Origin: Dimorphilus gyrociliatus | Taxonomy: Eukaryota > Animalia > Annelida | Assembly: GCA_904063045.1 (NCBI GenBank) | Contig: CAJFCJ010000007.1 | Coordinates: forward strand, 616,819-680,818 | Direction: 5' to 3' | Length of the DNA: 64,000 nt | Shown here: positions 755-58,931 of the stretch, one piece after another | Layout of the letters: each line of letters opens with the position of its first letter | Position numbering within the stretch: the first letter of the stretch is position 1 | Notes under the pieces: generated by a model | The model's database searches: none | What the model was told of the DNA's origin: nothing | The model's input: only the letters and a program-made list of their open reading frames with translations | Position numbers and translations under genes: made by a program

Positions 755-2276
755 TTAAGCATCTTGAGCAAGCCACTTTTCAAGCAAATCTCCAATCTTT
801 TGGCGAGCTTTTGTTAGTTGTGGGGGATCCTTTTTAGATGGTGGATACATATTGGCGCAATGTGCTGTACCTTGAATAAATATAGCCGGCGCATCCTGGT
901 TAAGGTCCTTAGTTAAACCAACTGCATGCCAGGGATCTATACTACCATTTGGGAATACAATTCGTGTTGCCTTCAAATTTCTAGCTCCGTAATTAGTGTT
1001 TGTTTCGTTTACATTAGCTTCGAGGTCTTTTAGGTTAAATACACCAAAAACATCAGAGCATATCTTGGCAGAAAATTTTAATCCGAAACCACTTCCAAAA
1101 GGTTGTTTTGGAGAATCAGATGTCTGATACCACCCAAACTCATTACAAGTCTGATATATCCACTGACGACCACCCACTGCCGCCTTCCAAGAAACATCTT
1201 GTAATTCTTTGATAACAGATTTATATGAAAAATCTAGGCAAGTTTGATTCGCGTCTAATAACAACAAACTATTGACTTTAGCATAATTTTCTAAAGCGTT
1301 TTCTGAAGTGTTTTTGCCACCAGTCATCAATTTACATAGCAAATCTATTGTTATTTGACTTCCACCTTCAAAGTGTCTATTATCTTTATTGTATTGGACT
1401 ATTCCTTCGAAATTACCAGCCAAAGATTCAAGTAGGTTTGAAACGTCATCGTTTTTGCTCATATCAATATCTGCGCAAAGTTTGAACATTTTTTTTAATA
1501 GCTGGCGATCACTTTTCTTAGCAAGCATGGCTTTGAATTTTTGTGAAGCTAAAGAAATGCGTTCATCGCATTGAGGGTTTATGGAATTTAACGATGCAGC
1601 TACAACCTCTAAGTACTCGTAAAAGTTTACTTTAGCAAATAGAGGCGCACTAGATGCAACAGCAGCATGAACTAAGTGAGGATATTTGGCGCGAAACCAA
1701 GCTGATAAGGCACCCGAATAAGAACCGCCAAATGATACCCATTTAGCTTTATTCATTTTTAAAAGGCTACTCATTTTCACCCGGAAATTAGCTAAATCTC
1801 GAAGTGCTTGTTCGCTTGTCAAATAGCGAAGATTCTCAACGCTGACATTTCTGAAATAATATTGATGACCTATTACAAAAAGTGTTATCGCATTATATAA
1901 TAAATTACTTGGTTGGATGACTATCTCCATAGAATCGATGCTCGATTTGTATGCAATAAGCGTTATATCTTTTGGCAAATTCAATCCATTCTCCTTGTAC
2001 CATCCACTTAGGACTGGCGGGGCCTTCACCTCCGATTTGTAGGAAAACTGGCCCTCCCGGTTTATAAAAAGTACTGTTTACGTAATACTTTTGCTTCCAT
2101 GTTCTTGTGTCTGCTGGGTTAAAATGATCAAGTTTTTGTTCAAACCACTTAGGAGCCGGTAAATATTTTCGATCTATATGCCCCTCTGGCTCCTTCAAGC
2201 CTTGATGTCTCAACAGACTTAATGCTTCTGTTCCCAAAAGGGTGCAAAATATTAAAAAGGAGGCAAGAGAATTCAT
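755..2276 (-). CDS. PRSS16: S28-family serine carboxypeptidase (PRSS16 / thymus-specific serine protease / K12H4.7-like), secreted or lysosomal; 2 exons
   Basis: Signal peptide ([18 protein letters not shown]); motifs QKLDHF, IGGEG, EHRFYG, GGSYSG (catalytic Ser), GSIDPWH, TAHCANM. ORFs 1905-2276 and 755-2029 are joined by a GT-AG intron 1851-1908, giving ...SHPTK|[10 protein letters not shown]. Confidence 0.9.
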
Positions 2277-2297
2277 TTATCATGTAATAGTTTTTTA

Positions 2298-2322
2298 TCA
2301 CATGACAATGGAATCACGTGAC
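2298..2322. promoter_or_regulatory. Two MiT/TFE-type E-boxes (ATCACATGAC, ATCACGTGAC) in the 161-bp bidirectional PRSS16/ORAI promoter
   Basis: Motifs read directly; they resemble the CLEAR/M-box consensus GTCACGTGAC / TCATGTG. Confidence 0.45.
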
Positions 2323-2437
2323 TTTACCGCCTCTTAATCTGGTTCGGTGGTGATTTTTTTAACAACTCAAATTGAATAAATTTTTCTTTATTTATTCCCT
2401 CCAAGGCACTTAACTTTCGCGAAAATTTTACACTGGT

Positions 2438-3136
2438 ATGACAGAAAATGAACAGTTGTCGTGGTTACCTAATCATAGCGAGGAGGCCGAAACTCGATTA
2501 TCATGGAAGAATATGCATCTCGCCAGATCGAAATTAAAGGCGACCAGCAGAACATCGGCCCTTTTATCAGGTTTCGCAATGGTCGTAATGGTTGAGTCCG
2601 ATACCAAAAATGTTAACGAAGGCTTATTAATCGCGTTTAGTGTATGTACAACTCTAGTGGTTGCGGTACATCTATTAGCGTTGATGATAAGCACCTGTGT
2701 TCTTCCCAATATAGAAGGAGTTCTATCCCAGAACGAACTCAATTCAGTTCACGAATCTCCCCATGTAAATTAATCATTACGCACAAAACGCTTTAATTAA
2801 TATAACTCAATGAATTTTAAATGACAACAGGTACGAATGCGATACTATATTGATATTTCTTGGATGCTCTCCACATTCATCGGTATCTTACTCTTTCTGG
2901 TCGATATTGCAATTCTAGGTTGGATTAGATTTAGCAAATTAGAAACTAGTAATGGAAAATACAAAAGTACAACTGGAGCTGCGACAGCGTCAACAGTTAT
3001 TATCATGCCTGCAATTGTCATTTTTATCATATTCGCTGTGTTGTTCTATAGAGAATTAATTGCTCATCGTGTAGAAACAACTGCTAATAAATTCAAAGAG
3101 TTACAAACGATGATGTCTCAGTTACAACATGTTTAA
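2438..3136 (+). CDS. ORAI: Orai calcium release-activated calcium channel subunit; 2 exons
   Basis: [33 protein letters not shown] matches Orai TM1 with the selectivity Glu. Intron 2765-2830 (gtaaat...acag) joins ESPH|[11 protein letters not shown]. Four TM segments. Confidence 0.95.
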
Positions 3137-3389
3137 ATATTTCTCATTTTTTTTTTCTCTCGAAACACCTCTTGTCTGATAATACATTTTAAATTTGCCA
3201 ACGTGAGCAATCATAAAATATTTCTGTTATCTTTTAAAAGAAATTATCAAAATTATCAGAACTATTAAAATATTTCATGTATTGACAAGATATATTATTT
3301 ATTTTGTTTTCCTTTATCTTGGCTTATAAGACTTTTTATTGTATTCTTTTAATATTTTCTACTATCGTTCAAAATCTAGTATGCCGAAT

Positions 3390-3800
3390 TTAACAGGTTG
3401 GAAGCTTTTTCATTGCGCTGTCGCTTGGCCAGAAGGTAAAAGTAAGAACGGGAGTATCGTCTTCCTCCTGTACACCTTTTCCAGTAAAACATTTCAATTC
3501 GCTGATATAGCCGATAGTCAATGTCATATCTCCTCTGGCTCCACGGATCTTAAAGTCAAAATCATTACGATTTTCCTATAAAAAAACATAAAAGACGAAT
3601 GATTAAAGTTAACTCCCTGAGAAAAATCAAATATAAAATATTACCTTAGGAGATTGCGGTAAATCGAACTCAATTCCAGTAAATGGAAATTTAAGAGCGA
3701 CTCTCTTGTCCTCTACTGTGCAGGTTCCTGCAATTGGCAAGTTCGAGTTGGACATTGGCATCCTCATGTACATGGTGGCTTGTCCTTCGTAGGTAGGCAT
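3390..3800 (-). CDS. Unrecognised 113-aa protein, 2 exons (3645-3800, 3390-3575); not in ORF track
   Basis: ATG at 3800, phase-0 GT-AG intron 3576-3644, TAA at 3390-3392. Product: MPTYEGQATMYMRMPMSNSNLPIAGTCTVEDKRVALKFPFTGIEFDLPQSPK|ENRNDFDFKIRGARGDMTLTIGYISELKCFTGKGVQEEDDTPVLTFTFWPSDSAMKKLPTC. Exons are GC-richer than the flanks. Confidence 0.8.
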
Positions 3801-4564
3801 AATTGAGTTTCTTAAGCTTTCAAAGTTAGAAAAGAAGAATGAGAGCTAGACCAGCGGTTTCTGCAATAAAATGAATTGTTGGTAAGGATATATCGGTCTG
3901 ACATTCATACACGTTATCAGCCATATTAATACTAATAAGACGGTCACAAATCTCACGATCGTTAATAAATAGCAAGTTTGTAAATATAAACAGCTCTTAT
4001 TTTGCGCTGTGCCTCTTTCATATTTGCATATTTTTTTCATATTTCATACTAGTTTGAAAAAAAGACTGTTTTTTTACAAAACTAATAAAAAACATAGAAA
4101 TAGAATAAAAAGGAAAATATTTGAATTTTTAATGTCAGCTTACCTTTGTTCTAGAGACAACTTTATCGCTTGGATGTACTTAAAACCTTTTTAAAAATAT
4201 TTGGGAGAGTCTACTTTGTGATATGTGGGCGGTACGGTTTCAGCACTCTACTTATTTGGATAGCCTTAAGTCACCGACAAAGTGTTGTAAAAGGTTATAA
4301 ATTGCATTCGAAATAATATAAATAAACTTTTTTTATAGCATAAACATGTGTTGGTTAATTAATCAAATTTCTTCGCGTAGTATACTTTGTATTTCGACCC
4401 AAGCTAAACGACACTTGTGTCATTTATTGCTTTACGTCTTATCAGTGTCAATATACATAATGGGAATGGTTTATTCAAACAAGATATCGTCTAATCTCCG
4501 CGTCATTTAAATTTGAGTAGGCGGATTTTTTTAATGGACAGTAATAAAGTCTGTTGTTCCAGTT

Positions 4565-49912: not shown

Positions 49913-50554
49913 CTATTTCGCAAACCTCATGATCCTGGCGAATTCTTCAAAATTAATACGGTTATCACCATCCTTATCGGCAACTGACATCATTTTCCTG
50001 ATTTGTTCTTCTGTAAAGTCCTCGCCCAACTCCCTCATAACTTGTCGTAATTCTTTTGCTTCTATATAACCGTCGTTATCCCTGTCGAACACTTTAAAGG
50101 CGTCTCGAATCTCTTGATCCTTACCTACAGGCTCCTTGAACGTATTCGCCATAATTACGACAAACTCATCAAAGTCGATAGCCCCGTTTTCTGACGTACA
50201 AGATAAATTAAATAGGAAGAAAAATCTAATGGTATAAGAGTAAATAATAAATAAATTTTTCTTACTGTTCTTATCTACACCTTTGACAATGGCTTTTGCT
50301 GTTTCTTCATTGGCAGAACGTTCATTTATACCGAGGAAAGTCATCATTTCCGCTAATTCATCTGATGTGATTTCACCGTTACCATCTTTATCGAATCGTT
50401 TGAAGATATCCCTTAAATCTAAAACAGACAATGAAAACACATTACAACCTATCCAAAATTATTACTATCATATTCCATAATCATCTATACCGTCTAAATC
50501 TTCCAAACTACTCTTTGATCCCTTATTAAACTTCTTTTTGGCAAATTTTAGCAT
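49913..50554 (-). CDS. Calmodulin-like EF-hand protein 1 (164 aa, divergent); 3 exons
   Basis: Four EF loops: DKDGNGEITSDE, DKNKNGAIDFDE, DRDNDGYIEAKE, DKDGDNRINFEE. Introns 50419-50490 and 50191-50265. Basic N-terminus MLKFAKKKFNK. Confidence 0.88.
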
Positions 50555-51505
50555 TGCTTACTCTGCAATATTTTTTTACAGAATGAAGTAATGGCTCTCC
50601 TCCACTCTAAACAATCTTCAATTAATTAAGAAAAAGCTTAGTTACAAAATAATAAAATAAAGGAACGCTAGGGAAGAATAGAGTAGGCAATGTTAAGACT
50701 TGTTTTAATCGTATATTTCTAGTTGTCAAGATTAATAGCTGCCACAATTTATTTAAACCGATTAAGACGAATATAAATAATTCTAACATAATTTATTAAC
50801 CTTTGAACGTTTTAAAATCTAGTTCATGGTTCATCATCAGTTCCAATTCTTCATAATTCAAATCCATAATGACTTTAGGAGAAATTTTCGTCCTTCGTGT
50901 GTAGTAAACAACTCATGACTACAAACTAGTTTTTTTGAAATTCCGGTGCATTAAGCCTTTGTCCCCGTCTTTTTTAAAATCAATTTTCTATCGAATAGAG
51001 CCTCGATATAAATCGATTGACCCCAATTAATATTGATTGAACGTTTGAAAGTAATAAAATATAAAAAAAGAGAAACAAAAAAAAGAAACAAAAAGAACTC
51101 TATGTTAATGAAGTAGTATTAATCTATAATAATAATAAAAGACTACATACGGAAATTGAAACTTAAAGCAATATATACATTTTTATGTATAAAACATACA
51201 AAAATGTATAAATATATCCTCTTTTTGTTTAGTTCTCTTTAATGTACATTTATTATTAATTGAATTATCTTATCTTGTTTTACGATTAAAATATGTAAAA
51301 TTTCGAATGGAAAAATGAAAAATATGTTTCATATGTAAAATTTCAATTCGGTAAATTTTTGTTTTTTCTTTATCATTTTTCTTCATCTTCATAATTATCA
51401 TTATGATTATCATCACCATCATCACCTTCTTCATCGTCTTCATCATCATTATCATATATATATAAATACATATATATATTATCTACAGAGCTCTTTGTTT
51501 TCTAA

Positions 51506-52285
51506 TCATTTTGTCATCATCATCTTAACAAATTCTAAAACAAATAAAATGTATGCTAATTTAGTCCATGTCTAAAAAATATGGTTAGATTTAATTACCT
51601 TCATAATTAACGCGACCATCTCCGTCCAGATCGGCTTCTCTTATCATTTCATCAACTGTAAAGGGTGCGTAACTAGGACATTAAATTTTTGTAGTTGCTA
51701 AATAAAATAAATCTCTATTGACAATATATAATATTTAATAGCAGTTTGCATATGGAGAAAGCAGTAAGAACATTTACATTCCCTGCTCTTCTACATATAC
51801 GTGTATGTACATGCATTTTAATGAATAATTTATTATTTATTAACGATAAGTATAGACTAAATCTTTTTGAAAATTTAAACAATATATCCGTTAAGTTACG
51901 CCCCTTCATCATCCGTTAATTTCTCTCCTAATGTTGTCATGACGTGCCTTAGCTCGGCTGCGGAAATATAACCGTCGCCGTTCTTATCAAATACCTTAAA
52001 AGATTCCCTCAATTCCACTTCTTCGTCAACGGGATTCTTCATATTTCTCGCCATCATGTGTATAAATTCCTCGAAATCGATACTTCCGTTGCCGTCAGCG
52101 TCGACTTCGTTGATCATGTCCTTTAGCTCCTGTTCGGATGGATTCTGGCCGAGCGATCTCATAACAATTCCTAATTCCTTCGAAGATATATAACCGTCGC
52201 CGTTCTTGTCGAAGAGACTAAAAGCCTCTTTAAAGTCTTCTATTTGTTCTTCCGTCAGTTCCGGATATTCCTCCTGTTTATTCAT
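51506..52285 (-). CDS. Calmodulin-like EF-hand protein 2 (close to calmodulin); 3 exons
   Basis: [39 protein letters not shown]...; exons 51900-52285, 51599-51672, 51506-51534 (...[11 protein letters not shown]|EFVKMMMTK*). The last intron is at the usual calmodulin position. Confidence 0.9.
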
Positions 52286-52745
52286 CGTTGTCTGGCCGTA
52301 ATTTGACTAAACTATCCTACTATTAACTATAATTACAGACAATTTAACAAAAAAAAATGGAAATAGAGAAACTTAGCGACAGTGTTTTTCCCTTTTTCCT
52401 ATTTTTATTACGATAATGATAATATCCTTAATGCAAATCACCTTTCTTATCTTATGCAACAGAGAGAGAGATAGATAGAGAGAGCACATCTTTCCATATG
52501 AATACAAACACATACTAATCAATGCTAAAAGCAACTTACCATATTTATTAGTTTGTTTGTTTTCTCATCTGATTGCTTTTTCAGAGCCTATGTATAAGCG
52601 GCCCGTCTCTGCATTAATACTGTACATTAATGCTAACCGCCAGTAATTATAGGGATAGTATCATATGCCGTAAAATATTCGATATTTATTGATGTGTTTT
52701 AAAAACCTTTTTTATAAATTAGTATATCGTGAATATTTTATGCGG

Positions 52746-55700
52746 TTAACGAGTAAACTGTTTGGCAGAGCTCAATAAATGCAAACCAGAAAAGAGTTTG
52801 TACAAATCGACTTCGGCGTAGGCGCTCTTCTGCAACTGCTTGTCAACGTGAGCTCGTAAGGCGTTCAGCGATCTCTGGGCGTCGCCTCGCTCTTGCATTA
52901 GTCGGCTCGCTCTCATCATTTGCTCGGTGTTGAGGGCTTGTTTACCCTTTTCCAGGTCGAAGATGTGGCGGTAGAAACAAAGTTGATCGTATAGTTGTTT
53001 GTCGCTATACTGTTTATTCATATTGTTTATAATAACATATATATATATATATATATTTAACCTTTAGATATTTATTTATTTATTTTAATAACAAACCTCA
53101 ACTTTTAGTATTCCATGGCCACAAACGTTACAAATAGGTGCTCTACCAATATTTAAAGTAACATTTCTTGTTCTTGCTTCGCATACCGGATCATCGCATT
53201 TCAACCAACCAGTATAATACTTATTAATGTGACGCCTCATCTCTATTGTCAGCTTATTCTTTATAATATTTACGTAACAGTCTTTGTACAAGGCCTCGCC
53301 ACATTCTTCGTTGCGACATTGGGCAAGAGCGAACGTCAAGTCAGAATCCTAATAAAAGCGAGAATAAATAGGCAAAAAGGGTTTCATATCCTTCCTTAAT
53401 CAAATTTTACAGGTGATCACTTACCTTACTGTTCTCAGAAACATATAAACAACTTTCTAGGCAATTAACTGTAGAACATTTAAAACATTCGAAAGAGAAA
53501 CGTTGGCAATCTTTAAACCTTTCCGCATCGCTTAGTTGCGTTATAAAGCCTTCGTCTTCGGTCGACCTTTCTTGATTATATTTGTGTTTAAAGTTACTTC
53601 CATCTAGACCAAGACATTCTGCAATCCTAACAGCATCGGTTCCCTCGATTGGATCACAAAGCCTACTAACAACTGGGTGAACTTGTTGAGCCAAGTAGTA
53701 ATTTTTATCTATATACGTAAATGAGCGAATAAAGATAAGAAAAAGGATGCAACTTCCCTAGTACTTATGTTATATTGATTAAGCTAACCTAATTTCAAAT
53801 TATCTTCCTTAGCTAATTCGTCTGGATGATATGCTCTCTCACTATGAGAGGTAGATGTTCCATCCTCGCAGATAACGTAAAACACCGTATCACCACCCCT
53901 AAGTTTTTTCCCACTCTTTGCGTTTATTCTCAAAGCCACTTGGACATGTGCCTGATGCTTCTTATCTGGGTAATCTTCCGGATTTTTAGCCAATTGCTAC
54001 GTGGAAAAATTATAAATATGACTTGCATTATTAACAATTGTCTAGCAATAAATTACTTTCGTAATGAAAAACTGCTCTACTCCAATTGAATCATTTCGAA
54101 CTTTTTCTGCTACAGAATAGAGTTCAGTATGAATATTTTCGACTATCTCTTCCTTAGATTTTCCGGATAGTATCTCAGATACAGCGAAACTAGGAAAGGG
54201 AAAAAATAATCAAAAAAATGATAAAAAATTGAGAAGAGAATAGGGAAAAAATAATAATGATAATAAAAGAGAGAAATACAATGATTATTAAGACGTTTTA
54301 TATCAGTTAAAACGTAATTAACCTACTTTCCAACAGTTTTAGCTAATTCGCACCAATCTCTTCTTACAATATCTAAGCCCTTCAACTCTTGTTTTGTGGT
54401 AATTTCCCCATTCTTTCCAACAGTTGCTACTAAAGCCGCATATTTTTTCTTCTTTAGCAAAAGCATTGACTTAAAAAGTCCGTCAATGTCGATTTCGAGC
54501 AATTTGTAGTGCTTATTTACTTCGTTCTTTACTCTTAGTCCAACTTTCATTACGTCTTCGTAATCGATAGAATTTGTATTAACCATAATTGAATCAGTAT
54601 CTCCATAGATAACTTCTAGATTCATCTAATTTATATAATAATCATTTAAATTAGTGGGAAATAAAAAGAAAAACAAGGCAAGAAAAGTTTAATTACTAAC
54701 ATTTGTTACCAAATCTTTAGTTTTCAGAAGAATCTCTCGGCCTTTACTTGTAATTAGTGAGGCCAACGGTTTAGCGTAAAACCTGGAATTGGAAAATCCA
54801 AGGCAGCCGTACATTGAATTGGCAGTTAATTTTAAAGCCTTTTGTCTTATATCATATTGTACGTATAAATCCGAATTAGGATCAGTTTTCTTCATTAACG
54901 CTTTAACATCTCGCCTACTGTGAACAAGCTTTCGTATTTCGGTAGGTAGAATACCAGTCTCAGAATCGGATGGCGGGACGTCTGGTATAAATTCTTCATC
55001 GTCAATACTCTTTTCACCATTTCTTTCAATTGTCGTAAAACAAATATTATATTCTTGAATAATCGAAGGATATAGTGAATTAAAATCCAATAATAAAATA
55101 TATTTGTCATAAAATCCTTTCTTTGGCTCTAAAACAAGACCCCCAGTATAAGCTGGCTTTCGACGACCTTGCTGACCTTTCCGTTTAGTTGTATCAAGAT
55201 GCATTTCACCTTCATCATCGGATAGATGATTCTAGTAAGCGAAGAATATTTTTCAGATTATAAAGATAATTTATATGCGTTATGTAGAAAAGCTAACAGT
55301 AATTTGTTGTTTCTTTCCATAAAATTTATCAGGAACAATAAACTGCCTTTCGTGAAAAGCATGCAAAAGCAAGAATTCGTTTCTTTCCGATCGACCGCCC
55401 AACATTGTTCGTGCCTTTTAGAGAGAATAAGAAAAGGAGTGCTGCGAATGAACGACTAAAAATCTTTAAAAATATTTACCATTAAATTTCCGCACACATT
55501 TGTTATTTGTAAGGCTAAAGGCAAGATATTCAATTCATACATTATTCTTAATATGAAACTAGAGTCTCTTAGAGTAACCTCTATCATATTTAGAATGCTT
55601 ATAGATTGACTGTTCAGAGAATGGGAAACAGAATAAGATTATTTTGATAAGAAAAAAAAAATACAGACTCAAAAGCCTTTTTCACTTCATTCGGATCTAT

Positions 55701-58700
55701 GGAAATTCTCGATTCCTTTAGGATCGAATTTGTTAGTTCATTAAGATCATAGCTTCTTAAACGTATAAGCTCTTTGGCCGAAACCATAACGTCGCAAAGC
55801 AAACGACCGCTAATTAGAAATTAAAAAGAAAATAGTGTATGACAAAACAATAAACAAGTTTTTACTTATTCAGATGCAATCATCTAGTTCTTTTACTAAC
55901 CTACAAATCCCTACGGCACCAGTGGCTTTCCCATGTAAATGCTAAATAGCAAAGAATGAGGTTAATTACAATAGGGAAAATGGACAATTATAATCTACTA
56001 CCATAATTTTAGGTGGTACCGATCTTTTCAATCTACCTAAACGAGACCAATGTGGTACTTTTAAAGTTGTTGTACGGTTTAATATAACATCTAAATCATA
56101 TCCAGCGATGTCGTGACCCTTAAAATGAAATAAGGTCAGTTGGTGACTTTTAACATAAAAAATAAAAAATCTATTAGGAAATTAGACTCTTATTTACTTA
56201 CAACGATAACATCCGGATCAATTTTAAAGATTCGAGCAAGAAGATAACTTAACAGACCTCTCTCAGTGCTAACATACTCAATATTAATACCTCTTTTATC
56301 CCTTTGCGATACAGCCTTAAAATCGAACGGTAAAATGCAATCATTTGGTTTTGTAAAAGCTGTTAAAGATAAAACATTTATAAGTGTTTATCATGAAATA
56401 GGTGCTTGTATATAAATTAATATACCGCAAAAATGCTCTTGAAAGTGTTCTTTTGGAGGTGGTTTATCTAAACTAAATTGTTTCTGAATTAAACAAGATG
56501 CAGCAAGAACTTCATTCTGATGAGTTTTCGGATTCGGAAGAGTTCTAACATTCAATGTTAAAACAATTAACGGAGGGGATGATATTGAATCAGAGCATAT
56601 TTTTATAAAATCTGGTTTCTGGATAGTTGCTTCAACTTTACACCATGAAATTGATACGCTACTTGTTTCTGTTTGTTTTTTTTTTTACAATTAACCTCTA
56701 TTAATAAAGTATCGTATAACTTTATTGAATGCTATTACCAGAATGAGATATATCGAGCCAACAGGGTCCTTTTAATCCTCTATCTAGAACAAGCTGTTCT
56801 AAACTAGAAGTATTAGTTCCAAAAGCACAAATGAACGTTTCTCCAGATATATTTTGGGGTAATTTTGGGTAATCAGCCTAAAATTTTTTTGTATATTATA
56901 ATTAGATATTATATAATATACTAATAAGATTTCTTACTGAATATCGAACTTCAAAATATTCAGCTTCTGCTGGAACTCCTGCTTTTTCAAATGCATACTT
57001 TTTCGGTGTTTTCTATTAAAATTTAGAATCAATTAAATCAATTTAATTAGTAAACTGAATAAAAGTGGAAAAGCAGTTAATTGTATTACTTTTGATTTAA
57101 ATTCTTTTATCTTGTATTTATCGGCTATTGAATTAAATTCTTTATAAATATCATTAAAAGAAACGTCCTCGTCTAGTTCTGTTTTCGTTTTTGTATCGTA
57201 TTTCTATGTAAATTAAAGTTTTTGTTTATAACTATTATTATATATTAATTGTATGTCATAAAACCTTTGAACGTGGTAATAAGAATAGTTGTCTTTCAAT
57301 ATTCTTTACTGTAATACAGCAACTGACATATCTGTTATCCTTTTGTATCTTACCAAACAGATAAATCAATCCTGAAAATGCGTTTTCAAAACACTCAATT
57401 AGATATTTAGTCTGAGACAAAGAAAACGAAAATTTACCTGGATGTTTCATTTGGTCTTCGTAGGCGTCAAACCAATATAATCTTATTATATTTTCACCAG
57501 CTTCGTTAGTTAAGGTGGGAAGCGAACCATTATCAGCTACAGTTTCCATTTCTTTTTCGGTATCTTCTGAACAACTCTTCCACATAGAATGATCAATATT
57601 ATTATCGGAAGAAAATGTCAACGAACTTCAAAGATAATTAATAAAGAAAATAAAGGTTAATAATAGTTCAAACAAATTATTTTAAAATAGCATACTTCAA
57701 TTTTGGTTCAGCTTTTACTTCGACTTTCTTTTCAATAACTTCTTCTTTGTTCACTTTTTTTGGACTTCTTGGCTTTATATCATCATCAATTGGTTCCATA
57801 CTAGCACATACTTCATTAAAATCATCATCATCATCTGGTATTTCAATGCTATAAATTCGCATTAAATTTAAATTGACATTTAGAAGTAGTGTAATAAATA
57901 TATTGATATATTGAATATTTCTTACCATTGTTTTTGAATTGTTTCAGCAGGTTTTTCTTGTTTTATTTCTATTTTTGGCCTCTTTGGCTTACTGATAAAC
58001 GGGTTAGATTGCCTGGAAAGTGTTAATTGAAGTAAGTAATTCGCTTATAAATTACAGCTATCTTACTGTTTTTCTCTTAGAACTGAGGTAGGTGTTTTAG
58101 GTGTAGAGTCGTGTTTGATTTCCGACATTAAATTTTCCAGGACATCGTCCTCATTAACAGTCTCTTCTTTCTTTTTTCGTTTTTTCACAGAACTCGATAC
58201 AGCACTTGCTAAAAACATGCGTTTGATATCTCCCGTTCCCTTAGGTGTTGGGGTAATTGTACTAGATCCTTTCTTATTCTTACTCTGATTGCCAGCATTT
58301 TCTATTGAACATGTACAGAATAAGCAAAAAATTACAGTAAATATTATTTACAAACTTTGCTTTTTCGAAGATTTTGAATTTAGTGTATCGTCCACATCTT
58401 CGTCAAATATTTCTCTTCCATCTTCAACATATCCACAACCATCTAGAAGTTTGAAAGTAAACTTATATTGAACGTGAAAATATAAATTAGAAAGTTGTCA
58501 AACCGTCATCTACAATCCAGTCATCATTTTGACGAGATTGAACAATGTTTGAATAGGTTTCTTCATCAACATAATCATAGACATTATCTGGATCGCTATC
58601 TTCATCCTAAAGTTGTGTTTTACAAATTAAAATACTCTACTTTTAGATGTTTAAATTTAAATAAAAAAAACATGTTATCTTCACCTCCGAAAACCTTCTT

Positions 58701-58931
58701 TTTCCAGCAGCTTTAAGTTCCTTAAACTTTCCTAATGCGGCTAATCTACCACTTTTATCTTTCTTCTGTCTTCTTGATCGGCCACGAGCAAGTGATTCTA
58801 ATATTAAAGAATACAAGCATTCAAAATCTATCTTAAGCCTACTGCTACTGTCATAATTTCACAAGTAGCTTGCATATTCATTCACTAAATTAATAAAATA
58901 TAGCACCTGAGTTTGTATCATTTTCCGCCAT
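52746..58931 (-). CDS. POLA1: DNA polymerase alpha catalytic subunit; many short introns
   Basis: N-terminal [22 protein letters not shown] and DWIVDDG; YWFDAYE; polB motifs [52 protein letters not shown]; C-terminal Zn-binding Cys pairs. First exon MAENDTNS inferred. Confidence 0.96.

Follow-up and report, generated by a model that had tools for sequence, protein, structure and literature searches.

A probable GG–AG intron with base-paired ends in a calmodulin-like gene of Dimorphilus gyrociliatus

A calmodulin-like gene of the annelid Dimorphilus gyrociliatus is interrupted at its fourth EF-hand by an intron whose two ends can pair with each other. Depending on how its splice sites are read, the protein either resembles its homologues throughout or carries seven additional residues where the entering helix of EF-hand 4 begins. 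Where this intron is cut, how it arose and what its paired ends may contribute to its removal are the questions that this locus raises.

Gene structure and distribution of intron 1

The gene lies on the minus strand of the window, a 64,000-nucleotide stretch of contig C7 of the 77.9-Mb assembly, and direct reading divides it into three exons (Table 1). All homology searches were run exon by exon. Exon 1, which ends on the minus strand in ...GAT GAT GAA GGG GCG TAA, is 76% identical to calmodulins and 81–83% identical to unnamed orthologue-like proteins (protein search), and corresponds to the first 127 residues of the public model CAD5116919.1 at 100% identity. Exon 2 shares 83–89% identity with orthologous loci (tblastn), and P0010, P0012, P0013 and P0014 end in sequence that matches the peptide of exon 3. 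The product has four EF-hand loops and is calmodulin-like, with PF13499 and PF13405 detected on P0003 and P0004, two read-through ORFs that are identical to exon 1 across its 127 residues.

Table 1 Features of the calmodulin-like gene and scores of its candidate splice sites
Feature	Window position	Strand	Description
Exon 1	51904..52285	-	M...TDDE and first base (G) of the Val codon; EF-hands 1-3
Intron 1, favoured reading	51656..51903	-	248 nt, phase 1, GG...AG; homology stops and restarts exactly here
5' helix arm	51894..51908	-	Exon -5 to intron +10; holds GG (donor, 51903-02) and GT (decoy, 51899-98)
3' helix arm	51659..51674	-	Intron -4 to -19; A51666 bulged; holds the decoy AG (51674-73)
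Favoured 3' splice site AG	51656..51657	-	Unpaired, 2 nt past the helix base, preceded by a pyrimidine-rich stretch
Exon 2	51599..51655	-	(V) and 18 residues; EF-hand 4 entering helix and loop
Intron 2	51535..51598	-	64-nt phase-1 GT-AG intron at the conserved NYE|EF position
Exon 3	51506..51534	-	(E)EFVKMMMTK and stop
GT donor	51899		Score outside +1/+2, -4.6; total, -0.7 (true-donor minimum total 1.8)
GG donor	51903		Score outside +1/+2, 3.7 (true-donor median 4.2); total, 2.5
Distal AG	51656		Score 5.0 (true acceptors: median 9.6, minimum 1.5)
Proximal AG	51673		Score 2.5, in the low tail (true acceptors: median 9.6, minimum 1.5)

The start of the gene may extend further than Table 1 indicates. 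Minus-strand positions 52540-52542 of the window hold a possible mini-exon, an ATG alone followed by GTAAGT, and the ATG taken as the start in Table 1 is preceded, 9 nt away, by a CAG acceptor (window 52291-52300, minus strand). An ATG-only first exon is the arrangement of many calmodulin genes, and translation may thus begin further upstream.

The initial annotation had described intron 1 as occupying a non-standard position and as a recent gain, and comparison with paralogues and orthologous loci, from which the intron is absent, bears this out and shows the gain to be lineage-specific. In the D. gyrociliatus genome the site is uninterrupted in all eight paralogues, true calmodulin included, five of which have the NYE|E intron in common. 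The orthologue-like ORFs P0123 (90% identical), P0128 and P0133 run through TDDE-V, their frame being lost only after NYE-G. A comparison of intron positions among orthologues, proposed earlier as a check, gives the same picture. We located 13 metagenome loci encoding ~80%-identical orthologues, which, going by their project numbers, we take to come from marine gutless-worm metagenomes. Intron 1 is absent from 13/13 of them, GA(R) GTC being contiguous at its site, and the next intron (NYE|EF) is shared, with a GT intron after NYE at every locus. Those loci whose contig reaches the preceding exon also have the ancestral intron before GNG. By these sequence comparisons, the Dimorphilus lineage has acquired a genuine phase-1 intron in TDDE|VDEM, where it separates the codons for Glu and Val.

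The same intron is present in a diverged Dimorphilus lineage (ORFs P0003, P0004 and P0121), where exon 1 is unchanged over 127 residues. Reading through into the intron yields GAYLNGYTL-stop in these three ORFs versus GA-stop-LNGYIV-stop in the window, a difference at 3 of the 10 intron codons that are read through. Tyr in place of the first stop implies a change from A to C or T at 51896. Since exon 1 has remained unchanged despite these differences in the intron, the gene appears to be under constraint and must be spliced productively. Two ORFs lie within intron 1 itself; neither has a counterpart in the protein collection. In another taxon, the orthologue (P0246, P0124 and P0245) appears to be interrupted after GEKL, at a point four codons before the position of the Dimorphilus intron, and the ORFs leave frame there with a Val (GTN) codon.

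Choice of splice sites

As the initial annotation had stated, a lone GT at 51899-98 faces two AG dinucleotides, at 51674-73 and 51657-56. Direct reading confirms these positions, together with two further points made there: GT51899 joined to AG51673 is in frame and adds GAYAPFT, and AG51656 yields the normal protein only with a non-GT donor, a cut after G51904 producing TDDE-VDEM. The remaining combination, GT51899 with AG51656, reads GCT TGA and stops immediately.

To score these sites, we built donor and acceptor position weight matrices (PWMs) from 32 GT-AG introns of the D. gyrociliatus genome (Table 1). The context of GT51899 falls below all 32 true donors. Four bases upstream, the GG site (AAG|GGGCGT) is donor-like except at +2. 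On the 3' side, the 17 nt that are coding in the annotated model resemble a 3' splice site, consisting of a pyrimidine run followed by CAG, and the distal AG at its end is single-stranded at the base of the helix described below, within which both the decoy GT and the decoy AG are enclosed. We therefore favour, with moderate confidence, an intron running from 51903 to 51656 and cut AAG|GG...CAG|, by which TDDE-VDEM is restored exactly, as in P0010, P0012, P0013 and P0014. Because AG is repeated at both junctions, the same intron can equally be written GG..CA or AG..AC.

A U12-type intron was also considered and rejected. The expected 5' site would be RTATCCTT and the expected branch site TCCTTAAC; the intron starts GGGCGTAA, and no TCCTTAAC-like motif is present in its last 40 nt.

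The principal alternative is an ordinary 227-nt GT-AG intron (51899..51673), with GAYAPFT opening the EF-hand 4 entering helix in every copy of the protein or in one of two isoforms; we consider this unlikely. The GT and AG that it needs exist and keep the reading frame, and GTAACT is close to GTWAKT, the loose donor pattern of the D. gyrociliatus genome, but no true donor of the reference set has a context as poor. Similarly, the upstream AG forms part of a YAG and has a candidate branch site of CTAC type 19 nt away, yet it is the weaker acceptor of the two, and its use would turn a stretch that looks like a 3' splice site into coding sequence. Both of its splice sites are buried in a helix of -21 kcal/mol, and an insertion at TDDE-V is found neither in the eight paralogues nor in the 13 orthologous loci nor among the listed homologues.

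The public model CAD5116919.1 (P0122, DgyrCDS5760) does use the GT51899-AG51673 pair and carries GAYAPFT. However, it ends ...NYE-DDEEGDDGDDNHNDNYEDEEK and skips the conserved last exon, EFVKMMMTK-stop (51534..51506), its tail being an acidic low-complexity stretch of apparent 3' UTR (window 51390-51534, minus strand). The last exon is thus probably mis-modelled, and a model that misses it is not transcript-faithful. PASA/EVM pipelines are not known to accept splice sites other than canonical ones. Since D. gyrociliatus was annotated by PASA/EVM (genome paper), CAD5116919.1 provides no evidence for the GT splice. Searching the protein collection with exon 1 and with its last 60 residues returned no 100%-identical transcript-derived protein or fragment.

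Several considerations weigh against the GG-AG reading. The GT51899-AG51673 product is in frame, and an insertion at the start of a helix might be tolerated; the scanning rule would select the upstream AG if the helix were open and the branch point far enough upstream; U1 would normally bind less readily to a 5' splice site covered by a 15-bp helix, and G at +2 is a mismatch to it (see below); and the PWMs derive from no more than 32 introns.

Terminal helix and a second GG-AG intron

An inverted-repeat search recovered the arms that the initial annotation had placed at 51906-51894 and 51674-51661. The repeat itself thus stands, but its length does not: instead of 13/14 bp, the arms listed in Table 1 form a 15-bp helix with one bulged A, to which pairing of +15 to +18 with -21 to -24 adds a 4-bp extension. 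Its duplex energy, calculated with fixed end windows of 20 nt by 30 nt, is -21.0 kcal/mol. Among 5000 shuffles of the 3' end, 3 reached this value; none of 5000 random 30-mers drawn from the window did, nor did any stretch in the interior of intron 1 (best, -9.1), indicating that the pairing is stronger than expected by chance. When the whole intron is folded (z = -3.3), the minimum-free-energy and the centroid structures both contain the helix.

For comparison, the ends of 18 GT-AG introns of the window, comprising 17 DNA polymerase alpha introns placed by eye and intron 2 of the calmodulin-like gene, pair at -1.1 to -7.4 kcal/mol (mean -4.8). All 17 of the DNA polymerase alpha introns examined are short (59–137 nt), GT-AG and devoid of terminal helices. 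In actin and tubulin introns, end pairing ranges from -2 to -12.8 kcal/mol; score-maximising refinement of these junctions was noisy in divergent paralogues, and for every junction the best solution and a GT-AG solution lay no more than 10 score units apart. The strongest pairing among the canonical introns sampled, -12.8, belongs to a 56-nt GT-AG intron of a tubulin-like gene on C32, and some GT introns may be helix-ended too.

The initial annotation had offered an RNA stem that controls splicing as one explanation of the repeat. A stem spanning both splice regions is indeed predicted and forms part of the reading that we favour; its control of splicing is what we infer. According to the genome paper, D. 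gyrociliatus introns are ~66 nt. In the mechanism that we propose, the helix would loop out an AT-rich interior of ~230 nt, bringing the 5' cut site to 5 bp from the helix base, where the CAG acceptor would lie single-stranded, and would keep the upstream AG and the one GT in the vicinity within the duplex. It could in this way shorten the effective length of the 248-nt intron, allow a long intron with a defective +2 position to act like the short introns of the worm, and hide decoys whose use would add seven residues or shift the frame.

A second intron with the same features is found in the AHCYL gene on contig C3 (146500-155500). Alignment to the intronless AHCY paralogue places a 2048-nt intron, CAG|GGAC...TCCAG|, at minus-strand index 1779..3826, between the invariant ...TAQ and TAVLIE.... 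Here no GT precedes the in-frame stop and there is hence no GT alternative, so the genome needs GG-AG splicing at least once. The ends of the AHCYL intron form a 12-bp helix with one bulged A (+1 to +12 with -3 to -15; -17.5 kcal/mol), its donor scores 4.9 outside +1/+2 (true median 4.2), and its site is uninterrupted in the sister paralogue on C6. The alternative notations differ between the two introns, AG..AC in the calmodulin-like gene versus AG..CC in AHCYL, which leaves GG-AG as the reading common to both. They share an exonic AG, a donor with G instead of T in a donor-like context, a strong terminal helix and an intron position not shared by relatives; support for an intron class comes from this one further intron, making n = 2 in all.

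Both helices also have a bulged A on the 3' arm, 2–3 bp from the 5' cut (51666; -6 in AHCYL), and both donors read GGRCG. With two cases only, this coincidence may be due to chance.

With the AHCYL intron in hand, the seven-residue insertion in EF-hand 4 that had been read from this locus loses its footing: the GT context is weak, a donor-like GG site lies next to it, no homologue compared has the insertion, and a GG-AG intron exists elsewhere in the genome. GAYAPFT is probably an artefact of assuming that the intron starts with GT, and the most likely product is an ordinary four-EF-hand protein without insertion.

Tolerance of G at +2 is not explained by U1. The genome contains nine full-length, high-scoring U1 genes, eight of which begin ATACTTACCTG and one of which has two substitutions (AAACTTACTTGG), as well as three truncated copies that begin GTAC. 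None of these copies, full-length or truncated, would pair with a G at +2. Given the canonical 5' ends, G at this position is a true mismatch, and U1 gives no reason why it should be tolerated. The AAACTTACTTGG gene lies at C3:2401789-2401954, and the GTAC copies carry an unrelated AT-rich 3' end; these may be variants or pseudogenes.

We made two blind screens of the window for helix-ended introns in open frames and discarded both, as the reversed control gave as many hits; one hit, 16150-16080, is a continuous ATP6AP2 exon.

A bolder interpretation would make the terminal helix the primary element defining the splice sites, so that such introns constitute an animal class with structure-specified ends. 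We regard it as a long shot. A class of this kind might tolerate any base at +2 and, by analogy with what is suspected for euglenids, might be removed by a route other than U1-first.

Finally, it is very unlikely that splicing at this site is unproductive, be the gene a decaying paralogue with a 129-residue protein (...TDDEGA stop) or the +2 base an error or polymorphism in a real AAG|GT donor: a stop does follow two codons after TDDE, no transcript-derived protein was found in the protein collection and the Gly codon (GGN) of the relative is compatible with any base at +2, but exons 2 and 3 are intact, flank a normal intron 2 and retain the identity to orthologous loci and the match to orthologue-like C-termini given above, the two lineages, whose introns differ, encode the same amino acids in exon 1, and recurrence of the GG donor in AHCYL makes a one-off base error unlikely.

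Origin of the intron and relation to known systems

The initial annotation had likened the intron ends to those of hAT-like elements and proposed an introner-like gain. In this scenario intron 1 would derive from a non-autonomous TIR transposon (an introner or MITE, hAT-like), the helix would represent its terminal inverted repeats, and either splice would be compatible with it; we judge this improbable. An imperfect terminal inverted repeat, a lineage-specific position and an AG on both sides are all present. However, the genome-wide copy search that had been suggested, run across the 77.9 Mb, matched the intron only to itself, and its terminal 13-mer occurs 27 times versus 19 for the control when one mismatch at most is allowed. 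No 8-bp or other target-site duplication adjoins the arms, AG alone being common to both junctions; the 7-nt TGATGAA repeat is an Asp-Glu coding repeat whose downstream copy lies away from them. Beyond the 3' arm the intron continues for a further 3–7 nt, and 5 bp of the complementarity fall in the exon, which predates the intron. Pairing of this kind is not expected of the terminal repeats that a transposon brings with it. Transposon-derived non-canonical introns bearing TIRs are known from Fritillaria, Amoebophrya and euglenids (PMC11282704; PMC7789003). For intron 1, the single copy, the unrepeated termini and the missing target-site duplication leave an introner or transposon origin unsupported. 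No Rfam family was found in the intron.

Among the systems described to date, the tunicate Fritillaria borealis offers close parallels. Its non-GT introns occupy species-specific positions while GT-AG introns keep the conserved ones (Henriet et al. 2019, via PMC11282704; PMC13326754), and the non-canonical introns have terminal inverted repeats and are removed by the major spliceosome. They are the large majority there, with ends that are mostly AG-AC or AG-AT and repeat families with target-site duplications, accompanied by divergent U2AF paralogues and changed snRNA m6A (PMC11282704; PMC13326754). The Dimorphilus intron is similar in having a non-GT donor, a lineage-specific site and inverted repeats at its ends. 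It differs in being GG-AG, in belonging to a small minority (0/17 introns of the DNA polymerase alpha gene, POLA1), in its single copy and in coexisting with canonical U1.

Nonconventional introns of euglenids have non-canonical borders, a stable pairing of the ends that joins the splice sites, and short junction repeats; their pairing is short (+4 to +6 with -8 to -6), and they are released as circular RNA by a machinery yet to be identified (PMC11282704). Non-canonical borders, paired ends and junction repeats recur in Dimorphilus, whereas its helix is 15 bp long and covers the donor itself, the context of which is U1-like. Introner and MITE introns of Micromonas, Aureococcus, Amoebophrya and Polarella come as many near-identical copies with target-site duplications (PMC11282704, PMC7789003). 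Intron 1 is like them a recent gain with terminal inverted repeats and a splice site partly provided by the target, but both copies and target-site duplications, for which we searched, are lacking. In yeast, Goguel and Rosbash reportedly found in 1993 a pairing between the region of the 5' splice site and that of the branch point. There, as may be the case here, intramolecular pairing cuts the effective distance between signals in introns longer than the norm of the organism; the yeast donors are canonical GT and lie outside the helix, whereas the Dimorphilus donor is buried within it.

In the searchable literature we found no such introns in annelids, and the D. gyrociliatus genome paper makes no mention of non-canonical introns. 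If RNA confirms the GG-AG junction, an annelid genome considered "conservative" would contain recently gained introns that depart from the GT rule and come with a clamp of their own. It would then offer a tractable animal model for the steps by which a new intron becomes spliceable, and would show what a spliceosome with an ordinary U1 accepts at +2. Annotation limited to canonical sites turns such introns into false insertions, frameshifts and truncated models, which here would correspond to the seven-residue insertion and the wrong C-terminus of CAD5116919.1.

Two other genes border the calmodulin-like gene on the minus strand of the window. The gene for the DNA polymerase alpha catalytic subunit spans 52749-58816 and has one further in-frame intron near 57400-57460, outside the 17 considered above. 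Directly downstream, at 49914-50560, lies a second EF-hand gene in tandem, both introns of which are canonical GT-AG.
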